Assembly (NCBI RefSeq): GCF_032444005.1
Contig: NC_091282.1
Span: forward strand, 71,734,001-71,798,000
Direction of reading: 5' to 3'
Origin: Ranitomeya imitator
Lineage: Eukaryota
DNA: 64,000 nucleotides
A program made the translations under genes and the position numbers. Every line of letters starts with the position of its first letter. Positions within the stretch are counted from its first letter, which is position 1. The notes under the pieces were generated by a model. It saw nothing but the letters and a program-made list of their open reading frames with translations. It made no database searches and was not told where the DNA came from. Below are positions 1,384 to 23,044 of this stretch, piece by piece.

Positions 1384-1607
1384 TACAGTGGGGCAAAAAA
1401 GTATTTAGTCAGTCAGCAATAGTGCAAGTTCCACCACTTAAAAAGATGAGAGGCGTCTGTAATTTACATCATAGGTAGACCTCAACTATGGGAGACAAAC
1501 TGAGAAAAAAAAATCCAGAAAATCACATTGTCTGTTTTTTTAACATTTTATTTGCACATTATGGTGGAAAATAAGTATTTGGTCAGAAACAAAATTTCAT
1601 CTCAATA

Positions 1608-2624
1608 CTATGTAATATATCCTTTGTTGGCAATGACAGAGGTCAAACGTTTTCTGTAAGTCTTCACAAGGTTGCCACACACTGTTGTTGGTATGTTGGC
1701 CCATTCCTCCATGCAGATCTCCTCTAGAGCAGTGATGTTTTTGGCTTTTCGCTTGGCAACATGGACTTTCAACTCCCTCCAAAGGTTTTCTATAGGGTTG
1801 AGATCTGGAGACTGGCTAGGCCACTCCAGGACCTTGAAATGCTTCTTACGAAGCCACTCCTTCGTTGCCCTGGCGGTGTGCTTTGGATCATTGTCATGTT
1901 GAAAGACCCAGCCACGTTTCATCTTCAATGCCCTTGCTGATGGAAGGAGGTTTGCACTCAAAATCTCACGATACATGGCCCCATTCATTCTTTCATGTAC
2001 CCGGATCAGTCGTCCTGGCCCCTTTGCAGAGAAACAGCCCCAAAGCATGATGTTTCCACCACCATGCTTTACAGTAGGTATGGTGTTTGATGGATGCAAC
2101 TCAGTATTCTTTTTCCTCCAAACACGACAAGTTGTGTTTCTACCAAACAGTTCCAGTTTGGTTTCATCAGACCATAGGACATTCTCCCAAAACTCCTCTG
2201 GATCATCCAAATGCTCTCTAGCAAACTTCAGACGGGCCCGGACATGTACTGTCTTAAGCAGTGGGACACGTCTGGCACTGCAGGATCTGAGTCCATGGTG
2301 GCGTAGTGTGTTACTTATGGTAGGCCTTGTTACATTGGTCCCAGCTCTCTGCAGTTCATTCACTAGGTCCCCCCGCGTGGTTCTGGGATTTTTGCTCACC
2401 GTTCTTGTGATCATTCTGACCCCACGGGGTGGGATTTTGCATGGAGCCCCAGATCGAGGGAGATTATCAGTGGTTTTGTATGTCTTCCATTTTCTAATTA
2501 TTGCTCCCACTGTTGATTTCTTCACTCCAAGCTGGTTGGCTATTGCAGATTCAGTCTTCCCAGCCTGGTGCAGGGCTACAATTTTGTTTCTGGTGTCCTT
2601 TGACAGCTCTTTGGTCTTCACCAT
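1608..2624 (-). CDS. Tc1 transposase, 338 aa, essentially intact DD34E
   Basis: Paired-like HTH N-terminus; WSDETK / QHDND / PDLNPIE with 34 residues between the second D and E. A K-to-stop change removes only the last 2 residues relative to the second copy (...GYITKY). Confidence 0.93.
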
Positions 2625-4025
2625 AGTGGAGTTTGGAGTCAGACTGTTTGAGGGTGTGCACAGGTGTCTTTTTATACTGATAACAAGTTTAAACAGGTGC
2701 CATTACTACAGGTAATGAGTGGATATAGATAAGTATAACACATCAACATGGTAGTCAGAAAAATCTCTAGATCTTAATAAATATACTCAATATACAAAAG
2801 GATGTATATACCATGTAAACTACAAAAGAGGATTTGTAGAGCCTATCATCAAATACTACATGAACAGCGATACAACAGATGATCAGAAGGCCAAGTATAG
2901 CTAATAAAATCACAATTTTTATTGAAAGTTATCTTAAAACCATATACAACCAAGGTGTACACAGAGAGACGAACTACTACAAAAATCACAATCACCCATA
3001 GACACGCGCAGCCACGGGTAATAGAGTATATATAGAACTATCTGTTATATCTTGGGAAACAGCTAATACTCTAAATCAATAATGTGCACAATCATCCCCA
3101 TAATAGGGCACTCCACACACACCCCCCTATAATGGGCAGGACATATGTCCCAAAGGATATGCAACCTATATGGGAAAACTCTATCACATCTCCCAGGCAT
3201 AGACACATCCACCATGCATAATATAAATCATACCCGGCCAGGAGGCCACATGATATAAACAACCATGTAAACAAATTACCTTGGTAGGGTAGTGGGGGAT
3301 GTAACTCTGATACCCGCAGCCGCGCGCGTGCCCCGACGCACGTTTCGGACTCCTTTATCAAGGGGCCTAGCATACACACACAAGTCACTCATATTTATAC
3401 ATCCTGGCAAGTGCACAGATAACCGCGCACCCGGAAGTCGCACGTGCTGCCCCAAGCATGACGCGTGCCGCTGCATGATCCCCGGCGACGCCCATCAGCA
3501 TCGGCGTCACAACGGAGCGGGGCCAAGCCGGACCAACACCACATCACAAGACGCCGAGAACTGGGAGGCGTGGCGGCGAGCATACACAGCACGCGTCAGA
3601 GGAAGCAGCGCGACTCTTAACCCTATACATACCAAACACACCAAACCGTGACAAGATAAATTAGAAAGTGCATACGGCGTATATTCACTCCTGATACAAA
3701 ACACAATTTATATACAGCGATAATACAATATTGTATCACATAAATGCTGCACACACAAAGGTGTGCCCAGTTGGATCAGTAGCACTTTATCCGGAATAGT
3801 CCAAATATTATGGCCGGAAACTAGATGTAGTGACCGGATCCGTTGCTCGCACAGTCCATTAGCCGTTTCTCGCACCTCCATAGTGAAATGTGTATACATA
3901 TATACCAATGTTACTAAAAAGCAATAAAAACAACAATTAGACACAATCGTATGTTAAAAAAACTTAAAAATACTTATATGGGGACATGATAAGTGGAATA
4001 TGAAGTACATGATAGTGGCACACAT

Positions 4026-6941
4026 CTACAAAAATGGGGCATAACTGATATTCTCGTTAAGTCCAGATGGTTGGACCGTGTCCAACGTCCATATCCACCT
4101 GGATTCTAACTGGGCCAATCTCTTAGTCATACTACCACCCCTAATGTCCATATCGAGCATATCTATGCCCCGAAATCTCAAGAGATCCCCATTACACTCG
4201 TGGTACCGCCTAAAATGACGAGGGATGGTTTTTAATACCGTAACATCCTCAACTGTTGCAGCAGCAGCAATGCCCAGAACGTGTTCCCTGATACGTATTT
4301 TCAATGGTCGTGTAGTCATGCCAATATAGATTTTCCGGCATGGACACACCGCATAGTAGATAACGTATCTACTGTTGCATGTGATCCGTTTCTTAACTGA
4401 AAATGTACGTGACCCATCCTGATTATCAAATGTATCAATCCGGTCAACATTGGTGCATGCTACACACCGGCCGCAAGGGAAACATCCATTGCGTACGGTC
4501 GCCTGGTCAAGAAATGTGTTACTAGGCATACCAGTGTAGTGGCTACGGACCAGGTGATCCCTCAGATTCCTTGATCTCCTTGCTGCAATAGCAGCTTTCT
4601 CAGGCACAAATCTGGAGATCACTGGATCAGCCCTCAAAATATGCCACGATTTATTCAGAATCCTTCTCATATGTGTAAATTGGGAATGGTAATCCGTAAC
4701 AAATCTCACCAAATCCTGGCCATTTTTTGAAGGCTGTTTAGGGCCATACAGTAAGGTGTTCCTAGACGTGTATTTCGCTCTGTTGAATGCTTTCTTGATC
4801 ATGCGATTACTAAAACCGCGTTCCTTTAACCTTAACTTCAGGTCATCAGCTTGTTTGATAAATTCCACATTACTTGAACACAACCTACGCAACCGGAGAA
4901 ATTGTCCGGTAGGGACTGATTGGATCATGTGACCCGGATGGGAGGAGGTGGCGTGCAACAACATGTTCGTGGAGGTAGGTTTACGAAAGATGTTTGTCTG
5001 TACCTCACCTTTCTCATCCTTATATAGTGAGACATCCAAAAATTCAATGGTTTGAGAATCATATTTATATGTGATGAATATATTCAACCGATTCTCATTA
5101 AGAGATGACATGAACACCTCTAGGTCTTCCAATGGTCCCTGCCAGATTAGTAAAATGTCGTCGATGTACCGCGTCCAGGAAAGGACGCGGCACATCGGCG
5201 AAGACCAATCAGGCAGGGGGAGGTCCCTCTCCCACAGCCCCAGGAACAGGTTGGCATAAGCCGGGGCGAAAGACGCCCCCATAGCTGTTCCCTGGAGCTG
5301 CAGGAAGAAGGACCCCTTGAAGACAAAAAAATTGTGTGTTAATGTAAATCTTAACAACTCCACAACCAACCTCTGAATGTCTACCGGCAAGTTGGACATA
5401 CTGAGAAAAACTTCAGTGGCATGAATCCCATCCTCATGCCTAATGCTGGTGTATAGGGATTCCACGTCCCCCGTCACAAACACCATATCGTCATCCAATT
5501 GTAAACCATCTACCCGTCGTAATAATTCACCGGTATCTTTTAGAAATGATGGCAACCCCTCCACTAACGGTTGTAGCTTTGAGTCAATCCAACGATTTAC
5601 ATTTTCGAGGTAATTACCTCTCCCCGATATAATAGGGCGTCCAGGGGGAGTCTGCGCATCCTTATGAATTTTAGGGAGTAGGTAAAAAGTAGAAATAGTT
5701 GGTTCTGATACAGTCAGGGCAGTAGCCAACTCCTGAGTTATAGTGCCCGCTTCCCTCGCCTGATTAATAATCAGGTGCAGCTGTGTGACAAAGGAGGACA
5801 ATGGGTTGAATGTCAGTTTTTTATAACACGTATTATTATTTAATTGGCGGAAGGCCTCTATCTCATAGAGTGTCTTCGGCCACACAACCACATTGCCTCC
5901 TTTGTCAGCTGGTTTATACACTACATCCGTAAAATCCTGTAGGACGCGCAGACGCCCCCTTTCTTCCTTGGTAAGATTGTCATTATATATATATCGTGGG
6001 ATTTCCATGAACTCCTTGGAGACAATCTGTACAAACAGGTCTATATTAGAGCAAGATGATATAGGAGGGAATTTCTTAGATTTAACACGTATTGACGATG
6101 GTACTTTACCTCCCTCCGGTGTGTTATGCTCAATAGCCAATTCCTCCAATGTACGTAGAGCTACTTGCTCTTCTTCTGTGGGAAAAATTTGGGAGAGGTT
6201 GCCATCAAAAAAATGCTTTTTAAAAATCAACGACCGGGCAAATAGATGTAAATCTTTGATAGCCGAGAAGGCATCAAAGCTCGCTGCTGGAGAAAAGGAA
6301 AAGCCTTTCTCCAATATATCTAGGTCTACATCTGAAAAAATATGTTTGCTCAAGTTAATTACCTTATTCTTGTATCTGGTTGCCACCGGGGAACGATCAT
6401 GCCGTCTATAAGGATGGAATACGTGTTCTCTCTGATTATGTCTGATCGATCCCGATCTAGTGGCTATAGATGACCCAGATACCTCAGATGTATCACTAAC
6501 AGATGACACTGACGTCTGTGAGGGGGTACGTCCCAGTTGCCGACCCTGTATCCGTGGTTTCCTCCACATATATACAGTCTGATTCTCATAATCTCTCCGA
6601 TCCCTATTTAACTTATTCAGTTGGGTAGCCTGGACCTTCTTCACCACAGCCTCCAAGGATTTATCCAACTGATTGTTAAACATACTCAATTTCTCCAACT
6701 TGCCCATAGTTTTTAATTCATCCTCAATTTTCTTAATCTCTGTATCCAACTGTGATATTATTTTGCTATTATGTTCACTTAATAGCTGCATAAAAACCTG
6801 CGAACATCCGTTGCAGGCCTCCTCCCACCGGGTCACAAACCCCGCATCCTCAATTGGAAATGTAGGAATCACCCTTACACGGAGACCTCTAGGAATCATT
6901 TTTCTAGCCAGATATTTGTCGAGAAATGTACGGTTCCACCA
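4026..6941 (-). CDS. Inverted, 5'-truncated copy of the same Penelope ORF
   Basis: Translation identical to the plus-strand ORF from WWNRTF to the stop. It begins at the inversion junction 6941/6942 and has no native start. Confidence 0.9.
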   Translation of the reverse strand, partial: WWNRTFLDKYLARKMIPRGLRVRVIPTFPIEDAGFVTRWEEACNGCSQVFMQLLSEHNSKIISQLDTEIKKIEDELKTMGKLEKLSMFNNQLDKSLEAVVKKVQATQLNKLNRDRRDYENQTVYMWRKPRIQGRQLGRTPSQTSVSSVSDTSEVSGSSIATRSGSIRHNQREHVFHPYRRHDRSPVATRYKNKVINLSKHIFSDVDLDILEKGFSFSPAASFDAFSAIKDLHLFARSLIFKKHFFDGNLSQIFPTEEEQVALRTLEELAIEHNTPEGGKVPSSIRVKSKKFPPISSCSNIDLFVQIVSKEFMEIPRYIYNDNLTKEERGRLRVLQDFTDVVYKPADKGGNVVVWPKTLYEIEAFRQLNNNTCYKKLTFNPLSSFVTQLHLIINQAREAGTITQELATALTVSEPTISTFYLLPKIHKDAQTPPGRPIISGRGNYLENVNRWIDSKLQPLVEGLPSFLKDTGELLRRVDGLQLDDDMVFVTGDVESLYTSIRHEDGIHATEVFLSMSNLPVDIQRLVVELLRFTLTHNFFVFKGSFFLQLQGTAMGASFAPAYANLFLGLWERDLPLPDWSSPMCRVLSWTRYIDDILLIWQGPLEDLEVFMSSLNENRLNIFITYKYDSQTIEFLDVSLYKDEKGEVQTNIFRKPTSTNMLLHATSSHPGHMIQSVPTGQFLRLRRLCSSNVEFIKQADDLKLRLKERGFSNRMIKKAFNRAKYTSRNTLLYGPKQPSKNGQDLVRFVTDYHSQFTHMRRILNKSWHILRADPVISRFVPEKAAIAARRSRNLRDHLVRSHYTGMPSNTFLDQATVRNGCFPCGRCVACTNVDRIDTFDNQDGSRTFSVKKRITCNSRYVIYYAVCPCRKIYIGMTTRPLKIRIREHVLGIAAAATVEDVTVLKTIPRHFRRYHECNGDLLRFRGIDMLDMDIRGGSMTKRLAQLESRWIWTLDTVQPSGLNENISYAPFL

Positions 6942-7828
6942 GAACACGTTCTGGGCATTGCTGCTGCTGCAACAGTTGAGGATGTTACGGTATTAAAAAC
7001 CATCCCTCGTCATTTTAGGCGGTACCACGAGTGTAATGGGGATCTCTTGAGATTTCGGGGCATAGATATGCTCGATATGGACATTAGGGGTGGTAGTATG
7101 ACTAAGAGATTGGCCCAGTTAGAATCCAGGTGGATATGGACGTTGGACACGGTCCAACCATCTGGACTTAACGAGAATATCAGTTATGCCCCATTTTTGT
7201 AGATGTGTGCCACTATCATGTACTTCATATTCCACTTATCATGTCCCCATATAAGTATTTTTAAGTTTTTTTAACATACGATTGTGTCTAATTGTTGTTT
7301 TTATTGCTTTTTAGTAACATTGGTATATATGTATACACATTTCACTATGGAGGTGCGAGAAACGGCTAATGGACTGTGCGAGCAACGGATCCGGTCACTA
7401 CATCTAGTTTCCGGCCATAATATTTGGACTATTCCGGATAAACTGCTACTGATCCAACTGGGCACACCTTTGTGTGTGCAGCATTTATGTGATACAATAT
7501 TGTATTATCGCTGTATATAAATTGTGTTTTGTATCAGGAGTGAATATACGCCGTATGCACTTTCTAATTTATCTTGTCACGGTTTGGTGTGTTTGGTATG
7601 TATAGGGTTAAGAGTCGCGCTGCTTCCTCTGACGCGTGCTGTGTATGCTCGCCGCCACGCCTCCCAGTTCTCGGCGTCTTGTGATGTGGTGTTGGTCCGG
7701 CTTGGCCCCGCCCCGTTGTGACGCCGATGCTGATGGGCGTCGCCGGGGATCATGCAGCGGCACGCGTCATGCTTGGGGCAGCACGTGCGACTTCCGGGTG
7801 CGCGGTTATCTGTGCACTTGCCAGGATG

Positions 7829-7836
7829 TATAAATA
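7829..7836 (+). promoter_or_regulatory. Candidate TATA box of the pLTR promoter
   Basis: TATAAATA downstream of a CpG-rich stretch (7600-7810) and ~30 nt upstream of the hammerhead stem I. Confidence 0.45.
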
Positions 7837-7861
7837 TGAGTGACTTGTGTGTGTATGCTAG

Positions 7862-7898
7862 GCCCCTTGATAAAGGAGTCCGAAACGTGCGTCGGGGC
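7862..7898 (+). ncRNA. Minimal type I hammerhead ribozyme in the pLTR (further copies 12270-12306 on + and 3330-3366 on -)
   Basis: GCCCC-UUGAUAA-A-GG(AGU)CC-GAAA-C(GUGC)GUC/GGGGC: 5-bp stem I, U3-A8 core variant, 2-bp stem II, self-complementary stem III ACGUGCGU, GUC cleavage after 7893. Confidence 0.75.
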
Positions 7899-8478
7899 AC
7901 GCGCGCGGCTGCGGGTATCAGAGTTACATCCCCCACTACCCTACCAAGGTAATTTGTTTACATGGTTGTTTATATCATGTGGCCTCCTGGCCGGGTATGA
8001 TTTATATTATGCATGGTGGATGTGTCTATGCCTGGGAGATGTGATAGAGTTTTCCCATATAGGTTGCATATCCTTTGGGACATATGTCCTGCCCATTATA
8101 GGGGGGTGTGTGTGGAGTGCCCTATTATGGGGATGATTGTGCACATTATTGATTTAGAGTATTAGCTGTTTCCCAAGATATAACAGATAGTTCTATATAT
8201 ACTCTATTACCCGTGGCTGCGCGTGTCTATGGGTGATTGTGATTTTTGTAGTAGTTCGTCTCTCTGTGTACACCTTGGTTGTATATGGTTTTAAGATAAC
8301 TTTCAATAAAAATTGTGATTTTATTAGCTATACTTGGCCTTCTGATCATCTGTTGTATCGCTGTTCATGTAGTATTTGATGATAGGCTCTACAAATCCTC
8401 TTTTGTAGTTTACATGGTATATACATCCTTTTGTATATTGAGTATATTTATTAAGATCTAGAGATTTTTCTGACTACC

Positions 8479-11400
8479 ATGTTGATGTGTTATACTTATC
8501 TATATATATCTTTTACTGTGTTTTGCACAGGCTGTACGTATGACATGGATTTCCAAGCTAAGGAAAAACATTGGCTGTTACATATAGACCAGGTGTTCGG
8601 GGGTGACGGAGCTAATTACCATGAGGATAGTGATATGAAGTGGGAAGAACAAACCACTATGCTGCAAAAAATGGTGGTGAAACGGACTAAATTATGGTGG
8701 AACCGTACATTTCTCGACAAATATCTGGCTAGAAAAATGATTCCTAGAGGTCTCCGTGTAAGGGTGATTCCTACATTTCCAATTGAGGATGCGGGGTTTG
8801 TGACCCGGTGGGAGGAGGCCTGCAACGGATGTTCGCAGGTTTTTATGCAGCTATTAAGTGAACATAATAGCAAAATAATATCACAGTTGGATACAGAGAT
8901 TAAGAAAATTGAGGATGAATTAAAAACTATGGGCAAGTTGGAGAAATTGAGTATGTTTAACAATCAGTTGGATAAATCCTTGGAGGCTGTGGTGAAGAAG
9001 GTCCAGGCTACCCAACTGAATAAGTTAAATAGGGATCGGAGAGATTATGAGAATCAGACTGTATATATGTGGAGGAAACCACGGATACAGGGTCGGCAAC
9101 TGGGACGTACCCCCTCACAGACGTCAGTGTCATCTGTTAGTGATACATCTGAGGTATCTGGGTCATCTATAGCCACTAGATCGGGATCGATCAGACATAA
9201 TCAGAGAGAACACGTATTCCATCCTTATAGACGGCATGATCGTTCCCCGGTGGCAACCAGATACAAGAATAAGGTAATTAACTTGAGCAAACATATTTTT
9301 TCAGATGTAGACCTAGATATATTGGAGAAAGGCTTTTCCTTTTCTCCAGCAGCGAGCTTTGATGCCTTCTCGGCTATCAAAGATTTACATCTATTTGCCC
9401 GGTCGTTGATTTTTAAAAAGCATTTTTTTGATGGCAACCTCTCCCAAATTTTTCCCACAGAAGAAGAGCAAGTAGCTCTACGTACATTGGAGGAATTGGC
9501 TATTGAGCATAACACACCGGAGGGAGGTAAAGTACCATCGTCAATACGTGTTAAATCTAAGAAATTCCCTCCTATATCATCTTGCTCTAATATAGACCTG
9601 TTTGTACAGATTGTCTCCAAGGAGTTCATGGAAATCCCACGATATATATATAATGACAATCTTACCAAGGAAGAAAGGGGGCGTCTGCGCGTCCTACAGG
9701 ATTTTACGGATGTAGTGTATAAACCAGCTGACAAAGGAGGCAATGTGGTTGTGTGGCCGAAGACACTCTATGAGATAGAGGCCTTCCGCCAATTAAATAA
9801 TAATACGTGTTATAAAAAACTGACATTCAACCCATTGTCCTCCTTTGTCACACAGCTGCACCTGATTATTAATCAGGCGAGGGAAGCGGGCACTATAACT
9901 CAGGAGTTGGCTACTGCCCTGACTGTATCAGAACCAACTATTTCTACTTTTTACCTACTCCCTAAAATTCATAAGGATGCGCAGACTCCCCCTGGACGCC
10001 CTATTATATCGGGGAGAGGTAATTACCTCGAAAATGTAAATCGTTGGATTGACTCAAAGCTACAACCGTTAGTGGAGGGGTTGCCATCATTTCTAAAAGA
10101 TACCGGTGAATTATTACGACGGGTAGATGGTTTACAATTGGATGACGATATGGTGTTTGTGACGGGGGACGTGGAATCCCTATACACCAGCATTAGGCAT
10201 GAGGATGGGATTCATGCCACTGAAGTTTTTCTCAGTATGTCCAACTTGCCGGTAGACATTCAGAGGTTGGTTGTGGAGTTGTTAAGATTTACATTAACAC
10301 ACAATTTTTTTGTCTTCAAGGGGTCCTTCTTCCTGCAGCTCCAGGGAACAGCTATGGGGGCGTCTTTCGCCCCGGCTTATGCCAACCTGTTCCTGGGGCT
10401 GTGGGAGAGGGACCTCCCCCTGCCTGATTGGTCTTCGCCGATGTGCCGCGTCCTTTCCTGGACGCGGTACATCGACGACATTTTACTAATCTGGCAGGGA
10501 CCATTGGAAGACCTAGAGGTGTTCATGTCATCTCTTAATGAGAATCGGTTGAATATATTCATCACATATAAATATGATTCTCAAACCATTGAATTTTTGG
10601 ATGTCTCACTATATAAGGATGAGAAAGGTGAGGTACAGACAAACATCTTTCGTAAACCTACCTCCACGAACATGTTGTTGCACGCCACCTCCTCCCATCC
10701 GGGTCACATGATCCAATCAGTCCCTACCGGACAATTTCTCCGGTTGCGTAGGTTGTGTTCAAGTAATGTGGAATTTATCAAACAAGCTGATGACCTGAAG
10801 TTAAGGTTAAAGGAACGCGGTTTTAGTAATCGCATGATCAAGAAAGCATTCAACAGAGCGAAATACACGTCTAGGAACACCTTACTGTATGGCCCTAAAC
10901 AGCCTTCAAAAAATGGCCAGGATTTGGTGAGATTTGTTACGGATTACCATTCCCAATTTACACATATGAGAAGGATTCTGAATAAATCGTGGCATATTTT
11001 GAGGGCTGATCCAGTGATCTCCAGATTTGTGCCTGAGAAAGCTGCTATTGCAGCAAGGAGATCAAGGAATCTGAGGGATCACCTGGTCCGTAGCCACTAC
11101 ACTGGTATGCCTAGTAACACATTTCTTGACCAGGCGACCGTACGCAATGGATGTTTCCCTTGCGGCCGGTGTGTAGCATGCACCAATGTTGACCGGATTG
11201 ATACATTTGATAATCAGGATGGGTCACGTACATTTTCAGTTAAGAAACGGATCACATGCAACAGTAGATACGTTATCTACTATGCGGTGTGTCCATGCCG
11301 GAAAATCTATATTGGCATGACTACACGACCATTGAAAATACGTATCAGGGAACACGTTCTGGGCATTGCTGCTGCTGCAACAGTTGAGGATGTTACGGTA

Positions 11401-11610
11401 TTAAAAACCATCCCTCGTCATTTTAGGCGGTACCACGAGTGTAATGGGGATCTCTTGAGATTTCGGGGCATAGATATGCTCGATATGGACATTAGGGGTG
11501 GTAGTATGACTAAGAGATTGGCCCAGTTAGAATCCAGGTGGATATGGACGTTGGACACGGTCCAACCATCTGGACTTAACGAGAATATCAGTTATGCCCC
11601 ATTTTTGTAG
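8479..11610 (+). CDS. Penelope-like RT plus GIY-YIG endonuclease (1043-aa open frame; probable true start ATG 8545)
   Basis: KPADKGG, YLLPKIHK, GRPIIS, DVESLYTSI, QGTAMGA, RYIDD, FLDV; Cys linker CFPCGRCVAC; VIYYAVCPCRKIYIGMTTRPLKIRIREH (GIY-YIG). No stops or frameshifts. Confidence 0.95.
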   Translation: MLMCYTYLYISFTVFCTGCTYDMDFQAKEKHWLLHIDQVFGGDGANYHEDSDMKWEEQTTMLQKMVVKRTKLWWNRTFLDKYLARKMIPRGLRVRVIPTFPIEDAGFVTRWEEACNGCSQVFMQLLSEHNSKIISQLDTEIKKIEDELKTMGKLEKLSMFNNQLDKSLEAVVKKVQATQLNKLNRDRRDYENQTVYMWRKPRIQGRQLGRTPSQTSVSSVSDTSEVSGSSIATRSGSIRHNQREHVFHPYRRHDRSPVATRYKNKVINLSKHIFSDVDLDILEKGFSFSPAASFDAFSAIKDLHLFARSLIFKKHFFDGNLSQIFPTEEEQVALRTLEELAIEHNTPEGGKVPSSIRVKSKKFPPISSCSNIDLFVQIVSKEFMEIPRYIYNDNLTKEERGRLRVLQDFTDVVYKPADKGGNVVVWPKTLYEIEAFRQLNNNTCYKKLTFNPLSSFVTQLHLIINQAREAGTITQELATALTVSEPTISTFYLLPKIHKDAQTPPGRPIISGRGNYLENVNRWIDSKLQPLVEGLPSFLKDTGELLRRVDGLQLDDDMVFVTGDVESLYTSIRHEDGIHATEVFLSMSNLPVDIQRLVVELLRFTLTHNFFVFKGSFFLQLQGTAMGASFAPAYANLFLGLWERDLPLPDWSSPMCRVLSWTRYIDDILLIWQGPLEDLEVFMSSLNENRLNIFITYKYDSQTIEFLDVSLYKDEKGEVQTNIFRKPTSTNMLLHATSSHPGHMIQSVPTGQFLRLRRLCSSNVEFIKQADDLKLRLKERGFSNRMIKKAFNRAKYTSRNTLLYGPKQPSKNGQDLVRFVTDYHSQFTHMRRILNKSWHILRADPVISRFVPEKAAIAARRSRNLRDHLVRSHYTGMPSNTFLDQATVRNGCFPCGRCVACTNVDRIDTFDNQDGSRTFSVKKRITCNSRYVIYYAVCPCRKIYIGMTTRPLKIRIREHVLGIAAAATVEDVTVLKTIPRHFRRYHECNGDLLRFRGIDMLDMDIRGGSMTKRLAQLESRWIWTLDTVQPSGLNENISYAPFL

Positions 11611-13059
11611 ATGTGTGCCACTATCATGTACTTCATATTCCACTTATCATGTCCCCATATAAGTATTTTTAAGTTTTTTTAACATACGATTGTGTCTAAT
11701 TGTTGTTTTTATTGCTTTTTAGTAACATTGGTATATATGTATACACATTTCACTATGGAGGTGCGAGAAACGGCTAATGGACTGTGCGAGCAACGGATCC
11801 GGTCACTACATCTAGTTTCCGGCCATAATATTTGGACTATTCCGGATAAACTGCTACTGATCCAACTGGGCACACCTTTGTGTGTGCAGCATTTATGTGA
11901 TACAATATTGTATTATCGCTGTATATAAATTGTGTTTTGTATCAGGAGTGAATATACGCCGTATGCACTTTCTAATTTATCTTGTCACGGTTTGGTGTGT
12001 TTGGTATGTATAGGGTTAAGAGTCGCGCTGCTTCCTCTGACGCGTGCTGTGTATGCTCGCCGCCACGCCTCCCAGTTCTCGGCGTCTTGTGATGTGGTGT
12101 TGGTCCGGCTTGGCCCCGCCCCGTTGTGACGCCGATGCTGATGGGCGTCGCCGGGGATCATGCAGCGGCACGCGTCATGCTTGGGGCAGCACGTGCGACT
12201 TCCGGGTGCGCGGTTATCTGTGCACTTGCCAGGATGTATAAATATGAGTGACTTGTGTGTGTATGCTAGGCCCCTTGATAAAGGAGTCCGAAACGTGCGT
12301 CGGGGCACGCGCGCGGCTGCGGGTATCAGAGTTACATCCCCCACTACCCTACCAAGGTAATTTGTTTACATGGTTGTTTATATCATGTGGCCTCCTGGCC
12401 GGGTATGATTTATATTATGCATGGTGGATGTGTCTATGCCTGGGAGATGTGATAGAGTTTTCCCATATAGGTTGCATATCCTTTGGGACATATGTCCTGC
12501 CCATTATAGGGGGGTGTGTGTGGAGTGCCCTATTATGGGGATGATTGTGCACATTATTGATTTAGAGTATTAGCTGTTTCCCAAGATATAACAGATAGTT
12601 CTATATATACTCTATTACCCGTGGCTGCGCGTGTCTATGGGTGATTGTGATTTTTGTAGTAGTTCGTCTCTCTGTGTACACCTTGGTTGTATATGGTTTT
12701 AAGATAACTTTCAATAAAAATTGTGATTTTATTAGCTATACTTGGCCTTCTGATCATCTGTTGTATCGCTGTTCAGGTAATGAGTGGAGGAAAGAGGAGA
12801 CTCTTAAAGAAGAAGTTACAGGTCTGTGAGAGCCAGAAATCTTGATTGTTTGTTTCTGACCAAATACTTATTTTCCACCATAATATGCAAAAAAAATGAT
12901 AAAAAAAACAGACAATGTGATTTTCTGGATTTTTTTTTCTCAGTTTGTCTCCCATAGTTGAGGTCTACCTATGATGTAAATTACAGACGCCTCTCATCTT
13001 TTTAAGTGGTGGAACTTGCACTATTGCTGACTGACTAAATACTTTTTTGCCCCACTGTA

Positions 13060-13192: not shown

Positions 13193-15318
13193 TGTCTACT
13201 ACTCGCGCTGAGATCAGTGCAACCAGGAGACGATGATGAGAGTTGTATTCAGCAGCAGCTGGGTAACTCCTGTGTATAATAAATAATTACACTAAAAAAA
13301 ATGGTGTGGGCTCCCACTCAATTTTCATAACCAGTATAGGGAAAGCCGATGGCTGGGGGCTGATGTTAATAATCTGAGAAAAGGGCTATATCCTAAAAGG
13401 TTCCCAGGCTATTAATAACAGCTCACAGTTCTTTGCTTAGCCTTTAATGGTGACTCTACAGGGGATCCCAGAAAAAAATGAGGTGGGGACCCATTATAAA
13501 TTAAAACCAGCAAAGGCTAAACAGACAGTTGTGGGTTGATATTAATAGCTTGACATGGGGTCAGAGATATTGGCCCCTCCAGGCTACCAACATCAGCACT
13601 CAGCCGCTCCAGAAATGGTACATCCATAAAATGCACCAAATACAGTATGGTGCCTAGCCTCGCTCTTCCCACTCGTTCTGTGGCGGTGGCAAATGGGGAA
13701 ATATGGTTGGGGTTCAAGTCAGTTTTGTATTGTCAGCTGACATTGACATCAAGCCCAGGAGTTAGTAATGGAGAAGCGTCTATAAGACGCCACCATTCCT
13801 GACCCCGTAGTCAAATTGTAAATAAAAAACACCCAGAATAAAGTCCTTTATTTGAAATAAAAATCCACTCCGTTTTACCGTCGCAGTGATCTCATTGAGG
13901 TCACCGCAGTTCATCTTCCCGTCTCACAGTGAAGTGAGTGTGGGAATGCAGCCTCAGGGACCAGCGGTAACCTCGATGGTGTCACTGCATGTCACTGATG
14001 CTGTGCTCGCAGCAGCTCCTCCCATGGTTTTCAGCAAATATGCAAATTACCTCATTACAGAGGAAGAGAGCTTGAACTCTGGTGACATCTATTGGAAGTA
14101 GAAATACTAAAAGTCAATATCGACCCTTTAACTAGCCTTGTCATATCACATAAGATCAAAGCCAAAACAGAATCTTAATTTGTAGACATGTGTTTAGAGG
14201 TGTTGCCCCTCCTCAATGCAAAGCATGAGATCTGATTTGGCGGTACGAGAGGCTTTTGACTGGGGTCTCAGAAGTAACATTTCTCCTAGTAAAGAGTTTC
14301 ATGCAAAGGTAAGCTTGTACGCAATGTCTCTCATGCAGCCAAATCAGATCTCATGCTTTTCTGCTCAACTTCTGATCCTAAAATTCCTCGAAAAACATCA
14401 ATCCTTGAGACTTCAATTACTGAAAAAGGAGAATGGTCATTTGTTAGTTGGAAAGACAAAAACTAATGGTCATCTGACCAACTGAAGGTCTATAATAAAC
14501 ATGTTGTTACTTGAACAATACAATGCAGTGTGCGCACAATTATTAGGTAATTTGTATTTTTTATTACTAATTTTATTATTGAACATCTCCAATGCTCTTG
14601 GTCAATCCAAAGAGTTAATAAACCTGAAACTTGAATATTTAAGAAAGTAACAGTATCTACATGTGCAGAATTATTGTGCAACTAATAAAAATTCAAAATT
14701 TTACATCTCTATTGTTTATTTTCAATTGTTAACCCCTTTACCCCCAAGGGTGGTTTGCACGTTAATGACCGGGCCAAATTTTACAATTCTGACCACTGTC
14801 CCTTTATGAGGTTATAACTCTGGAACGCTTCAACGGATCCCAGTGATTCTGACATTGTTTTCTCATGACATATTGTACTTCATGATAGTGGTAAAAATTC
14901 TTTGATAGTACCTGCGTTTATTTGTGAAAAAAACGGAAATTTGGCGAAAATTTTGCAATTTTCCAACTTAGAATTTTTATGCAATTAAATCACAGAGATA
15001 TGTCACACAAATACTTAATAAGTAACATTTCCCACGTGTCTACTTTACATCAGCACAATTTTGGAACCAAAATTTTTTTTTGTTAGGGAGTTATAATGGT
15101 TAAAAGTTGACTAGCAATTTCTCATTTTTACAACACCATTTTTTTTTAGGGACCACATCTCATTTGAAATCATTTTGAGGGGTCTATATGATATAAAATA
15201 CCCAAGTGTGACACCATTCTAAAAACTGCACCCCTCAAGGTGCTCAAAACCAAATTCAAGAAGTTTATTAACCCTTCTGGTGCTTCACAGGAATTTTTGG
15301 AATGTTTAAATAAAAATG

Positions 15319-15735
15319 TATCGTTTCTCCTTATGGAGTGTGACATACCATCTCTGGCTTGTCAAGGTAAGGAGGCTTATTCTCCGTGCAATGCTCCTCT
15401 GGGAAATATAATATGCAAATTGCCTCTTCCGAGAAAAAGAGGACTTAACTCTATAGCGCCACCTGTTGGAAGTAGCGATCCTACAAGTCACAATCAACTC
15501 TTTAATGAGTCGTGCAATATGACTTAGGATAAAAGCCAAATTAGTATCTCAATTCGCAGACACGGTGTTTCGGGCTGTTGGCCCTCGTCAGTGCGAAGCA
15601 TGAGAACTAATATGGCTAGGTGAGAGGCTCTGGACTGGGGCCTAAGGGGTATCGTTTCTACTTATGGAGAGTGACATACCATCTCTGGCTTGTCAAGGTA
15701 AGGAGCCTTATTCGCCGTGCAATGCTCCTCTGGGA
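15319..15735 (-). mobile_element. Retrozyme / satellite-2-like element: 331-bp monomer plus ~87-bp terminal redundancy
   Basis: Direct repeat 15319-15406 ~ 15650-15737; 7-bp TSD AAAAATG (15312-18, 15736-42); host element sequence rejoins across it; central canonical hammerhead. Confidence 0.8.
15553..15597 (-). ncRNA. Canonical type I hammerhead ribozyme
   Basis: UUCGCA-CUGACGA-GGGC(CAACA)GCCC-GAAA-CACCGUGUC/UGCGAA: 6-bp stem I, perfect core, 4-bp stem II, short near-palindromic stem III, GUC cleavage between 15559 and 15558. Confidence 0.88.
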
Positions 15736-17014
15736 AAAAATGAACATTTAACTTTTATTCACAAAAAATTTACTTCAGCTCCAATTTGTTTTATTTTACC
15801 AAGGGTAACAGGAGAAAATGGACCCCAAAAGTTGTTGTACAATTTGTCCTGAGTGCTTCACAGAAGTTTATAATGCAGAACCGTAAAAATAAAAAATCAT
15901 ATTTTTTCACAAAAATTATCTTTTCGCCCCCAATTTTTATTTTCCCAAGGGTAAGAGAAGAAATTGGACCACAAAAGTTGTTGTACTTTTTGTCCTGAGT
16001 ACGCTGATACCCCATATGTGGGGGTAAACCACTGTTTGGGTGCATGGAAGAGCTCGGAAGGGAAGGAGCGCCGTTTGACTTTTCAATGCAAAATTGACAG
16101 GAATTGAGATGGGACGCCATGTTGCGTTTGGAGAGCCACTGATGTGCCTAAACATTGAAACCCCCCACAAGTGACACCATTTTGGAAAGTAGACCCCCTA
16201 AGGAACTTATCTAGATGTGTTTTGAGCGCTTTGACCCACCAAGGGCTTCACAGAAGTTTATAATGCAGAGCTGTAAAAATAAAACAAAAATTTTTTCCCA
16301 CAAAAATTATTTTTTAGCCCCCAGCTTTGTATTTTCCCGAGGGTAACAGGAGAAATTGGACCCTAAATCTGTTGGCCAATTTGTCCTGAGTGCGCTGATA
16401 CCCCATATGTGGGGGGGAACCACCGTTTGGGCGCATGGGAGGGCTCGGAAGGGAAGGAGCTCCATTTGGAATGCAGACTTAGATGGAATGGTCTGCAGGT
16501 GTCACATTGCGTTTGCAGAGCCCCTAATGTACCTAAACAGTAGAAACCCCCCACAAGTGACACCATTTTGAAAACTAGACCACATAAGGAACTTATGTAG
16601 ATGTGATGTGAGAGCTTTGAACCCCCAAGTGTTTGACTACAGTTTGTAACTGTATATTGGAAACTAGACCCCCCAGGGAACTTATCTAGATGTGTTGTGA
16701 GAACATTGAACCTCCAGTTTCACTACAGTTTATAACGCAGAGCCTTGAAAATAAAAAATCTTTTTTTTTCCCACAAAAATTAAATTAAAGAAATTGGACC
16801 CCAAAAGTTGTTGTCCTATTTGTCCTGAGTGCGCTGATACTCCATATGTTGGGGTAAACCCCTGTTTGGGCACACGGGAGAGCTCGGAAGGGAAGAAGTA
16901 CTGTTTTACTTTTTCAGCGCAGAATTGGCTGGAATTGAGATCGGATGCCATGTCGCGTTTGGAGAACCCCTGATGTGCCTAAACAGTGAAAAAAAAAACA
17001 CAATTATAACTGAA

Positions 17015-17254
17015 ACCCTAATCCCAACAGTAACCCTAACCACACCCCTAACCCTGACACACCCCTAACCCTAATCCCAACCCTATTCCCAACTGTAAAT
17101 GTAATCTAAACCCTAACCGTAACTTTAGCCCCAACCCTAACCCTAACTTTAGCCCCAACCCTAACTGTAGCCCTAACCCTAGCCCTAACCCTAGCCCTAA
17201 CTCTAACCCTAGCCCTAACCATAGCCCTAATCCTAGCCCTAACCCTAGCCCTAA
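17015..17254 (+). repeat. Degenerate telomere-like (CCCTAA/CCCTAG)n tract inside the piggyBac-like element
   Basis: Repeated CCCTAACCCTAG and CCCTAA units read directly. Confidence 0.85.
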
Positions 17255-20200
17255 TGGGAAAATGGAAATAAATACATTTTTTTAATTTTTCCCTAACTAA
17301 GGGGGTGATGAAGGGGGGTTTGATTTACTTTTATAGCTGTTTTTATGATTGGCAGCCGTCACACACTGAAAGACGCTTTTTATTGCAAAAAATATTTTTT
17401 GCGTTACCACATTTTGAGAGCTATAATTTTTCCATATTTTGGTCCACAGAGTCATGTGAGGTCTTGTTTTTTGCGGGACGAGTTGACGTTTTTATTGGTA
17501 ACATTTTCGGGCACGTGGCATTTTTTCATCGCTTTTTATTCCGATTTTTGTGAGGCAGAATGACCAAAAACCAGCTATTCATGAATTTCTTTTGGGGGAG
17601 GCGTTTATACCGTTCCGCGTTTGGTAAAATGGATAAAGCAGTTTTATTCTTCGGGTCAGTACGATTACAGCGATACCTCATTTATATCTTTTTTTATGTT
17701 TTGGCGCTTTTATACGATGATGCTGCATGGCGGCTCTTTTTTTGCGGGACAAGATGACGTTTTCAGCGGTACCATGGTTATTTATATCTGTCTTTTTGAT
17801 CGCGTGTTATTCCACTTTTTGTTCGGCGGTATGATAATAAAGCATTTTTTTTTGCCTCGTTTTTTTTTTTTTTCTTACGGTGTTTACTGAAGGGGTTAAC
17901 TAGTGGGCCAGTTTTATAGGTCGGGCCGTTACAGACGCGGCGATACTAAATATGTGTACTTTTATTGTTTTGGTTTTTTTATTTAGATAAAGAAATGTAT
18001 TTATGGGAATAATATTTTTTTTTTTCATTATTTAGGAACATTTTTCTTTATTTTTTTTTACACATTTGGAAACATTTTTTTTAACTTTTTTACTTTGTCC
18101 CGGGGAAGACATCACAGATCGGTGATCTGACAGTTTGCACAGCACTCTGTCAGATCACCGATCTGACTTACAGCACTGCAGGCTTCACAGTGCCTGCTCT
18201 GAGCAGGCTCTGTGAAGCCACCTCCCTCCCTGCAGGACCCGGATGCCGCGGCTATCTTGGATCCGGGTCTGGAGCAGGGAGGGAGGTAGGGAGACCCTTG
18301 CAGCAACGCGATCACATCGCTTTGCTGCGGGGGGCTCAGGGAAGCCCGCAGGGAGCCCCCTCCCTGCGCGATGCTTCCCTGTACCGTCGGCACATCACGA
18401 TCATGTTTGATCGCGGTGTGCCGGGGGTTAATGTGCCGGGAGCGGTCCGTGACCACTCCTGGCACATAGTGCCGGATGTCAGCTGCGATAGGCAGCTGAC
18501 ACCCGTCCGCGATCGGCCGCTCTCCCCCCGTGAGCGCGGCCGATCGCGTATGACATACTATCCCCTCGGTGGTCATAGGGGCCCATCCCACCTCGACGGG
18601 ATAGTACGTCTAATGTCAGTAAGGGGTTAAAGTGAGAATAATAACCGAAACAGCTCAAAATGTAAAAAAATACATTTCTGACATTTGAATAAAAATCTCA
18701 GTGACAATATATCTAACATTCTACTGTATTCAATAACAGTCATAATTCTTCTACTCATAGAGTCTACCAGATAGTTAATCAGTTGACGATTTTTTTGGGC
18801 AGCACCAACCACAGACTCTCGACACTGATCAGAGAGGGGACTGTTTTCCCTCACAGTAAAATTTCCCATATAGAAAGGGCCACAAGTTCTCAATAGGGTT
18901 TAGGTCAAGCGAGGAAGAGGCCGGGTCATTCTTGCCTCATTATTAAGGCATTTACTGGCAGCCGAGCAGTTGAGACTTCAATGCTGCAATGGAGCAGTGT
19001 CCTGCAGAAAAATCATGGATTTCTTGAAAGATGCAGACTTTTCCCTATACCACTGCTGGAAGAAAGTGCCTTCTAAAAACTGGCAGTAGGTTTGAGAGTT
19101 GATTTTGATTCCATCTTCAACCCCAAAAGGTCCAACTGGCTCATCTTTAACAATACCAGCCCATAGCAGTGCCCCAAGTCCACCTTGCTGGCGTCTGAGT
19201 AGAGGTGGAGGTTTGTGACCATGGTCCATCAAGAGTCACAATTCTCATCAGTCCATAAAACCCTTGAAAAATCTGTCTTCACATATTTCTTAACCAAGTA
19301 TTGACATTTCGTCTTCTGTGACTTGTTTAGTGGTGGTCAGGTTTCAGTCTTCCTTACCTCGACCATATCTCCGAACACTGAAAAGCTTGCAGTTCTCTGC
19401 CTTGTTCAGTGGTGGTTGGGCTTAGCCTTCCTTAAGTCGGCCATGCCTCTGAGCACCTTGTACTTCTGTGTCTTTTTCAGTGCTGGTTGGTTCAGCCTTC
19501 CATACCTCGACCGTGTCTCTGACGCTTGAGCACGCTGTACTTCTATGTCTTGTTCAGTGGTGGTCGGGTTCAGTCTTCCATACCTCGATCGTGTCTCTGA
19601 GGCTTGAACACCCTGTACTTCTGTGTCTTGTTCAGTGGTGGTCGGGTTCAGCCTTCCTTACCTCAGCTGTGCCTCTGAGCCTTGATCACCCTGCACTTCT
19701 GGGCCTCCAGGGAGGTTGCAGTTCTATAATATGACAGCATTGGAAGATAATGGCTTCTTAGTCACTTCACATTTGATTCTTCTCACAACTTTGGCAGCTA
19801 ATTTGCATCTTTCTGGCTCAACGCATTTGCTTGTGACCCCGTTCACTATTTGAAACAAAACTTTTGATAGTTCTGTGATCACGCCCCAATATTTTAGCAA
19901 TTTCAGGAGTACTGCATTCCTCCCTAAGGCTTGTATCAATTTATTTTTCAGTTGGTTAAATCATTTTTTTGGCCCATTTTACCTGAATACAAATACATAT
20001 CACCTGATCTCCTTCATCCAATAAGCATCGAGTTTATACAGCTTGGAGGTGGAAAATCGGCATACAAATGATGATCCGTTCAAAATACTCACTGCCTAAT
20101 AATTCTGCACACAGTGTAGACACATGGATGTGTATAAATTAGGTGGAAAAATATTTAGAATTGAGAGTCCTCAGTGGTTGATACCTTTTAATGGCTAACT

Positions 20201-21781: not shown

Positions 21782-21822
21782 TTGCCTGATGAAGAGACGT
21801 ATGTAGTCTCGAAAGCTTGCAA
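21782..21822 (+). ncRNA. Minimal hammerhead-like motif in the pLTR of the second Penelope
   Basis: UUGC-CUGAUGA-A-GAGAC(GUAUGUA)GUCUC-GAAA-GCUU/GCAA; stem III is reduced to the palindrome AGCU and could form only as a dimer. Confidence 0.55.
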
Positions 21823-21864
21823 TTTGTTACCATCTTTTCAGTTAGCCATTAAAAGGTATCAACC

Positions 21865-23044
21865 GTTTGATACCGTGCCGCACAAGAGGTTGGTACACAA
21901 AATGAGAATGCTTGGTCTGGGGGAAAATGTGTGTAAATGGGTTAGTAACTGGCTTAGTGATAGAAAGCAGAGGGTGGTTATAAATGGTATAGTCTCTAAC
22001 TGGGTCGCTGTGACCAGTGGGGTACCGCAGGGGTCAGTATTGGGGCCTGTTCTCTTCAAGATATTCATTAATGATCTGGTAGAAGGTTTACACAGTAAAA
22101 TATCGATATTTGCAGATGATACAAAACTATGTAAAGCAGTTAATACAAGAGAAGATAGTATTCTGCTACAGATGGATCTGGATAAGTTGGAAACTTGGGC
22201 TGAAAGGTGGCAGATGAGGTTTAACAATGATAAATGTAAGGTTATACACATGGGAAGAGGGAATCAATATCACCATTACACACTGAATGGGAAACCACTG
22301 GGTAAATCTGACAGGGAGAAGGACTTGTGGATCCTGGTTAATGATAAACTTACCTGGAGCAGCCAGTGCCAGGCAGCAGCTGCCAAGGCAAACAAGATCA
22401 TGGGGTGCATTAAAAGAGGTCTGGATACACATGATGAGAGCATTATACTGCCTCTGTACAAATCCCTAGTTAGACCGCACATGGAGTACTGTGTCCAGTT
22501 TTGGGCACCGGTGCTCAGGAAGGATATAATGGAACTAGAGAGAGTACAAAGGAGGGCAACAAAATTAATAAAGGGGATGGGAGAACTACAATACCCAGAT
22601 AGATTAGCGAAATTAGGATTATTTAGTCTAGAAAAAAGACGACTGAGGGGCGATCTAATAACCATGTATAAGTATATAAGGGGACAATACAAATATCTCG
22701 CTGAGGATCTGTTTATACCAAGGAAGGTGACGGGCACAAGGGGGCATTCTTTGCGTCTGGAGGAGAGAAGGTTTTTCCACCAACATAGAAGAGGATTCTT
22801 TACTGTTAGGGCAGTGAGAATCTGGAATTGCTTGCCTGAGGAGGTGGTGATGGCGAACTCAGTCGAGGGGTTCAAGAGAGGCCTGGATGTCTTCCTGGAG
22901 CAGAACAATATTGTATCATACAATTATTAGGTTCTGTAGAAGGACGTAGATCTGGGGATTTATTATGATGGAATATAGGCTGAACTGGATGGACAAATGT
23001 CTTTTTTCGGCCTTACTAACTATGTTATGTTACTATGTTATGTT
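21865..23044 (+). mobile_element. 5'-truncated CR1 LINE (RT C-half open to the native stop at 22930) inserted in the Penelope pLTR
   Basis: FDTVPH, GVPQGSVLGP, IFADDTKL; CR1 3' end with (TACTATGT)-like tail; AACC duplicated at 21861-64 and 23045-48. Confidence 0.92.

Follow-up and report, generated by a model that had tools for sequence, protein, structure and literature searches.

A 1.26-unit hammerhead repeat inserted near an intact Penelope-like element in a frog genome, probably a solo copy of a non-LTR retrozyme

We analyzed a 417-bp insert located in the window, by which we mean the whole 64,000-nucleotide stretch of Ranitomeya imitator DNA under study. Our results indicate that this insert most probably represents a metazoan non-LTR retrozyme family in the genome of an anuran, as a solo, dead-end copy. 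The DNA displays a ribozyme motif, a discrete insertion flanked by a duplication within a host repeat, a length greater than one unit, a family whose members do not share ends, and a co-resident Penelope-like element (PLE) with the same insertion architecture. From these features, we infer an RNA intermediate, its circular or multimeric state, and a PLE as the mobilizer of the insert.

The presence of type I hammerheads in amphibian repeats of ~330 bp has been known since 1987. Such repeats were reinterpreted in 2020 as non-LTR retrozymes yielding circular RNAs (Cervera & de la Pena, PMC7229834), and a later survey reported retrozymes, whose consensus averaged 316 bp, in 7 of 7 amphibians (Li, Clavereau & Pollet 2026, bioRxiv 10.64898/2026.07.22.740005). 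In that survey, the amphibian retrozymes were phylogenetically next to the pseudo-LTRs of PLEs, and monomers were dispersed along chromosomes (10.64898/2026.07.22.740005). The class is thus already known, from its description in 2020 and from the amphibian survey of 2026, and the insert is another example of it.

Results

The insert interrupts a host tandem repeat of ~390 bp, which occupies window positions ~15150-17000 in units that are 70-87% identical. When the insert was removed together with one AAAAATG, the joined flanks were colinear, by alignment, with three paralogous units of the host repeat. Because of this colinearity across the junction, the three units can be taken as paralogous empty sites. 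The two copies of an 89-nt direct repeat (15318-15406 versus 15649-15737) showed 96% identity and a start-to-start spacing of 331, and the terminal redundancy amounts to 87-89 nt. The exact ends of the insert are ambiguous by 1-3 nt, since the unit is also matched by the G of the left duplication and by the first AA of the right one (microhomology). Inside the 417 bp, the longest stretch free of stops is 76 codons, and this frame grows to 79 codons only by continuing into the left flank. The initial annotation had described a non-coding 417-bp insert with a 7-bp duplication and an 87-bp terminal redundancy of period 331, and our measurements bear out this description. The insert carries no poly(A) tail. 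Beyond the host repeat, we noted degenerate interstitial telomere-like repeats, variants of (CCCTAA)n, directly after it at 17014-17254, and a 78-bp tandem repeat at 19313-19701 (about 3-5 copies, 86% identity).

Table 1. Positions of the features discussed in the text, in window coordinates
Feature	Position	Strand	Basis or remark
Insert	15319..15735	minus = sense strand	417 bp; 1.26 units of a 331-nt non-coding hammerhead-bearing repeat
Left target-site duplication copy, AAAAATG	15312..15318	.	Sequence; single AAAAAT(A/G)-like copy at paralogous empty sites
Right target-site duplication copy, AAAAATG	15736..15742	.	Sequence, paralogous empty sites
Terminal redundancy, sense-3' copy (end of complete unit)	15319..15405	-	Direct repeat
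Terminal redundancy, sense-5' copy (partial upstream unit, comparable to PLE pseudo-LTR)	15649..15735	-	Direct repeat
Type I hammerhead	15553..15597	-	Rfam RF00163 full-length match, descriptor scan, folds
Hammerhead helix I	15597-15592 with 15558-15553	-	6 bp
Hammerhead core CUGACGA	15591-15585	-	
Hammerhead helix II	15584-15581 with 15575-15572	-	4 bp, loop CAACA
Hammerhead GAAA	15571-15568	-	
Hammerhead helix III	15568-15566 with 15562-15560	-	3 bp, 3-nt loop
Predicted cleavage site, after C of GUC	C15559	-	
Extended helix I, 5 bp more (UCUCA/UGAGA) beyond internal loop	15546..15605	-	MFE fold of 62-nt segment and whole unit
Copy 2, older, same family as insert, about one unit	14037..14332	-	~74% identity alignment, core destroyed
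Inverted unit piece abutting sense-5' side of copy 2	14323..14359	+	Inverted repeat, 37 nt, 86%
Octamer ATGCAAAT	15413..15420 and 14040-14047	+	Alignment of insert with copy 2
PLE composite insertion	2724..12773	+	Self-comparison, 15-bp duplication, inside Tc1-like transposon
PLE inverted 5'-truncated copy	2724-6944	inverted	
PLE partial tandem copy (pseudo-LTR)	6942-8365		
PLE full copy	8366-12773		4408 bp
PLE intact ORF	8479-11610		1043 aa, RT and GIY-YIG
PLE 15-bp duplication CAGGTAATGAGTGGA	2709-2723 and 12774-12788		
PLE pseudo-LTR hammerhead-like motif, UUGAUAA core	12270-12306, 7862-7898, 3330-3366	+, +, -	Sense orientation

The two terminal copies of the insert differ at four positions (15329, 15339, 15375, and 15383 versus 15660, 15670, 15706, and 15714), a divergence of 4.5%. 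All four differences are transversions, and no CpG has decayed. We considered whether this pattern pointed to a heterogeneous template, which it fits as well as it fits age, and found that it was not significant, as the local ratio of transitions to transversions is near 1:1. The 4.5% difference could reflect age, a heterogeneous multimeric template or array, or RT error.

The minus strand of the insert carries a hammerhead of type I topology, with three helices and helix I open. All positions of the invariant core are canonical (C3 U4 G5 A6 N7 G8 A9, G12 A13 A14, A15.1-U16.1, and H17). In an 81-nt search against Rfam Hammerhead_1 (RF00163), model positions 1-45 were fully covered with 30.6 bits, under the curated gathering score of 34, and with an E value of 1.9e-6 that becomes ~1.5e-3 once scaled to the window. 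The motif was unreported by the Rfam gathering-level search of the whole window and by a 651-nt E-value search, which we attribute to its sub-threshold score and, probably, to speed filters. In our own structural descriptor scan, it was the only complete hammerhead in the 64 kb. As a null, we used Markov-simulated windows with the same dinucleotide statistics, which gave a mean of 0.02 matches per window and at least one match in 4 of 200 windows. The exact ribozyme pattern had no match in the viral, prokaryotic-genome, and metagenome collections scanned. Elsewhere in the window, hammerhead-like pattern matches at 2126, 59372, and 36378 are not ribozymes, since none of the three passes the helix test; those at 2126 and 59372 lie inside Tc1-like transposase ORFs (Pfam). 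A weak hammerhead match at 43787 looks like chance.

We then evaluated the folding of the ribozyme. Helix III (ACAC-C-GUGU) showed no predicted stability as a hairpin, and a duplex calculation gave -8.8 kcal/mol for its self-duplex. The catalytic fold is predicted to lie 3.3 kcal/mol above the MFE of the hammerhead monomer, and a cofold prediction of two ribozyme segments yielded only a trivial domain swap. For the 331-nt unit RNA, strong structure is predicted (z = -4.1), and the global fold includes ribozyme helices I and II. Since helix III is weak alone, the models imply cleavage in the dimer, a dimer-dependent design documented for the newt and axolotl ribozymes (PMC7229834) and for the PLE ribozymes (PMC4209133). 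The insert hammerhead is presumably catalytic. The initial annotation had called it a textbook type I hammerhead on the minus strand, a description that suits the core at every position but not helix III, which is minimal and unstable as a hairpin; the comparison with Rfam models that it had suggested gave a match over the full length of the model, at a score below the threshold.

The shortness of the motif and its score below the Rfam gathering threshold would be compatible with a chance match, the repeat then being an ordinary small LTR-like or MITE-like element. We consider this extremely improbable, as the match extends over the full model with every invariant core base in place, at the E values and the descriptor null given above. 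Furthermore, no PBS-like or PPT-like stretch was seen when the sequence of the insert was read by eye, and terminal inverted repeats at its ends were absent from the listing of the repeat scan. The second copy of the family in the window, described below, also argues against such an element, since it has no ends in common with the insert and carries a recognizable decayed motif at the homologous site.

This second copy, hereafter copy 2, lies 1.3 kb upstream of the insert on the same strand and is 74-75% identical to the insert unit, in an alignment that is reliable over 14037-14287 and tentative beyond, to 14332. Decay has turned its ribozyme core into UUGAGGA and UAAAC, and the copy gave no Rfam match; the homologous site recognizably holds the same motif in a decayed state. 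Copy 2 starts at unit position 15410 and continues through unit position 15319, where the insert ends. Since copy 2 ends at other unit positions, the two genomic copies that we inspected at the DNA level share no ends, with the reservation that those of copy 2 are blurred by ~26% divergence. The same junction between the 3' end of the unit and its own 5' start is present in copy 2 and in the insert. An inverted piece of the unit abuts copy 2 (Table 1), and a possible degenerate duplication of ~10 bp, TTTTCAGCAA (14028-14037) and TTTTCTGCTCAA (14358-14369), may surround copy 2 and the inverted piece.

To extend the family beyond the window, we translated the sense strand of 15321-15548 (-) and searched protein collections. 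Three Ranitomeya imitator gene models (P0121, P0122, and P0123; GCA_958301615.1), located on three contigs, carry pieces of the retrozyme unit, each consisting of 36-44 residues from the same unit frame. In the core of P0122, 31/32 residues match, and the passage into a second matching frame is accounted for by an indel of one base. One of the three models is LRRFIP-like and one is beta-crystallin-like. The pieces are in sense orientation and continue through unit positions 15404-15410, so these positions are not family-wide termini. The exons may represent real exonization or annotation artifacts. The unit contains an AG/G acceptor-like site near 15427 and a G/GTATGT donor-like site near 15350. 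Together, the two copies in the window and the three on separate R. imitator contigs define a multicopy, dispersed family. The proposal of a retrozyme whose copies differ in their ends, as opposed to a single-copy sequence, is thus upheld by copy 2 and by the three gene models.

In the alignment of the insert with copy 2, the longest block without any difference spans 12 nt and includes the octamer ATGCAAAT, which is kept as QFAYY codons in the Ranitomeya gene-model copies. The octamer is a possible promoter or enhancer element.

With its 1.26 units, the insert locus has a single hammerhead. An "active" retrozyme is recognized by a tandem of two or more successive units that bear hammerheads (Li et al. 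2026, 10.64898/2026.07.22.740005), an arrangement found neither at this locus nor in copy 2. In the terms of Li et al., the insert is therefore a monomer derivative and not an active retrozyme. With its one hammerhead, the locus is unable to release unit-length RNA alone, and a propagating tandem form of the family is presumed.

On the other side of copy 2, the window contains an element with an intact ORF that is, by its coding sequence, a PLE. The ORF combines RT motifs (YIDD) with a linker rich in Cys and with a GIY-YIG nuclease, in which two Cys lie between GIY and YIG. Its Pfam matches to RVT_1 and GIY-YIG are weak, its homologues carry PF00078 and PF01541, and its best protein matches are from dendrobatid frogs, with 56% identity. 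The Cys motif of the linker suggests the Neptune group. The composite insertion consists of a 1.32-mer plus an inverted copy, without poly(A), and its parts are 99.9% identical. It interrupts a Tc1-like transposon, whose intact paralogue (58628-60240) supplies the empty site and reveals the 15-bp duplication. The composite conforms to the architecture described for PLEs, which comprises a pseudo-LTR formed by a partial tandem, an inverted 5' copy, and a duplication of variable length, and partial tandems are the normal outcome of PLE integration (PMC8557442). At its two outer ends, the composite corresponds to different unit positions, about 8365 and 8505, an arrangement suggestive of priming from both ends of the target. 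This PLE family is probably active currently or was so recently. The window contains three Tc1/Sleeping-Beauty-like transposon copies (1384-13059, split by the PLE; 58614-60240; and 51746-52588), the first two of which are 98.6% identical and have ~210-bp terminal inverted repeats.

No canonical hammerhead was found in the PLE. Its pseudo-LTR sequence holds a hammerhead-like motif, a U3-A8 core variant with a helix I of 5 bp, a helix II of 2 bp, and no Rfam match, for which our own descriptor gave a null of 0.14 sites per 64 kb. A U3-A8 covariation variant has been described for PLEs (PMC4209133). The PLE ends at 12773, 2.5 kb from the insert, and is by far the younger of the two, with 0.1% divergence between its arms versus 4.5% between the terminal copies of the insert. 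A comparison within the window detected no nucleotide similarity between the PLE and the insert. The initial annotation had pointed to this ORF-intact Penelope as a candidate helper. The ORF is real and intact, but the element, as judged from these comparisons, is neither the source nor a close relative of the insert, and it qualifies as a helper at the class level only. Moreover, a 5'-truncated LINE-type RT ORF at 21782-22930 (+) (RVT_1, 4e-20; nearest solved structure, R2 RT), unrelated to the PLE RT, represents another RT class near the insert, so a PLE is a putative rather than an established helper class.

The insert might instead be a severely 5'-truncated copy, a solo pseudo-LTR plus tail, of an autonomous hammerhead-bearing PLE family residing elsewhere. 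PLE insertions are mostly 5'-truncated and bear hammerheads in their pseudo-LTRs (PMC4209133; PMC8557442), and the boundary between the categories is thin, given that the Xenopus retrozyme families are sisters of PLE pseudo-LTRs (10.64898/2026.07.22.740005). Nevertheless, this origin appears unlikely. The 3' end of the insert unit joins its own 5' start with a period of 331, as it does in copy 2, whereas a long truncated element would show internal PLE sequence upstream of it. In addition, the insert has no similarity to the PLE of the window, and its ribozyme is a canonical type I hammerhead (4-bp helix II, 6-bp helix I), not one of the minimal PLE type.

Discussion

We propose the following cycle for the insert, read as a solo retrozyme copy. 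Master copies elsewhere in the genome, composed of tandem 331-bp units, would be transcribed on what corresponds to the minus strand of the window. As the palindromic helix III would be too weak alone, the type I hammerheads of adjacent units would pair and cleave after GUC (C15559). Cleavage would free 331-nt RNAs, which a host ligase could circularize. A Penelope-like RT/GIY-YIG enzyme would then copy a circle or an uncleaved multimer by target-primed reverse transcription. In the target, the plus strand would be nicked after ...AAAAATG (15318), and the 3'-OH generated there would prime the cDNA. Synthesis would proceed from unit position 15319 rightwards over 1.26 units and through the intact hammerhead site; the end of the cDNA would be joined by a 2-nt microhomology, and the duplication would result from a second nick 7 nt away. 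In this scheme, the sense RNA corresponds to the minus strand, so the first-strand cDNA would be the plus-strand DNA if the insertion was RNA-mediated.

The extent of the insert bears on the nature of the template. A monomer released by the hammerhead would end at 15558; instead, synthesis would have passed through the ribozyme and 87 nt of a second pass. Synthesis beyond the cleavage site implies a template with an uncleaved or religated site and more than one unit, so the template of the insert would be either a circle or a multimeric transcript, two forms that would leave the same sequence. The claim that a 1.26-mer fits a circle or a multimer thus stands as far as a template of more than one unit is concerned, but the circle is not singled out: the PLE, an element nobody supposes to be circular, is itself a 1.32-mer, so the 1.26-mer supports PLE-like integration more than it supports a circle. 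The insert and copy 2 together display both PLE outcomes, a partial tandem in the one and an inverted 5' piece in the other.

Tandem repeats are known to give rise to circular DNA. A satellite piece of 1.26 units might accordingly have been re-inserted from an extrachromosomal circular DNA or during the repair of a staggered break, without any reverse transcription, and the permuted copy, longer than one unit and devoid of a poly(A) tail, would agree with such a DNA-level origin. We regard it as very unlikely, because the 7-bp duplication is clean, microhomologies occur at both junctions, and copy 2 has an inverted 5' piece, all of which mirror the PLE composite, and because the exonized copies of R. 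imitator are dispersed over three contigs.

Returning to the retrozyme copy and its proposed cycle, we put forward a broader suggestion that we ourselves find rather doubtful. Taken together, the insert, copy 2, and the PLE might show directly, at the sequence level, that retrozymes are integrated through target-primed (twin-primed) reverse transcription of the PLE type, at variable positions along an endless template, and the perfectly conserved ATGCAAAT may mark an internal snRNA-type promoter as in newt satellite 2, for which such a promoter is reported in work cited in PMC2220036. If the promoter reading of ATGCAAAT were true, a module of promoter plus ribozyme would have been retained across frogs and salamanders. 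The mobilization of animal retrozymes is still a model and not a demonstrated pathway, and the insert alone adds an instance but no principle. It is nonetheless useful as a clean, datable worked example, in which a clear duplication and paralogous empty sites accompany a template-spanning hammerhead, next to an autonomous PLE of the same architecture, and from which a genome-wide analysis of insertion end-points could start.

Comparison with known systems

Like the plant LTR retrozymes (PMC4918200), the insert is non-autonomous, bears a hammerhead and direct terminal repeats, and has a proposed circular RNA intermediate. The plant elements differ by their type III hammerheads within true LTRs, PBS and PPT, 4-bp duplications, length of 600-1000 nt, and Gypsy helpers, all of which are absent in the insert.

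The resemblance to the minimal hammerheads of PLE pseudo-LTRs (Cervera & de la Pena 2014, PMC4209133; Lunse et al. 2017) lies in the type I topology, the dimer-dependent helix III, and the association with a partial-tandem or inverted insertion architecture. In contrast to these minimal ribozymes, that of the insert is canonical, with a C3-G8 core, a 4-bp helix II, and a 6+5-bp helix I. Unlike PLEs, the insert has no ORF, and the PLE of the window has at most the U3-A8 variant with its 2-bp helix II.

The initial annotation had labeled the insert satellite-2-like. This holds for the length of the unit, ~330 in urodele satellite 2 and in the axolotl Rtz_331 and Rtz_353 (axolotl clone, 331), and for the type of ribozyme, which has the same topology; helix III of the insert, ACAC-C-GUGU, is one base from that of the axolotl HHR_Amex2, ACACGUGU. 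The insert also contains an octamer motif, and an snRNA-type promoter is reported for newt satellite 2 (cited in PMC2220036). The label is supported for these features of length and ribozyme; outside the ribozyme core, a comparison with the axolotl clones made by eye showed no convincing similarity. Furthermore, unlike the satellite 2 of newts and salamanders, the insert resides in a frog and is a dispersed single insertion, not a long array.

Feature for feature, the insert agrees with the metazoan non-LTR retrozymes, the exceptions being a single hammerhead at this locus and a score under the curated Rfam threshold. Like them, it has a non-coding unit within 170-400 nt, a type I hammerhead, a GC content of <50%, a duplication of >4 bp, no LTR, PBS, or PPT features, and an amphibian host. 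Its unit RNA is predicted to be structured while leaving the ribozyme free, and its weak helix III implies dimer cleavage. Finally, these retrozymes co-occur with PLEs, represented here by the intact element at 2724-12773.
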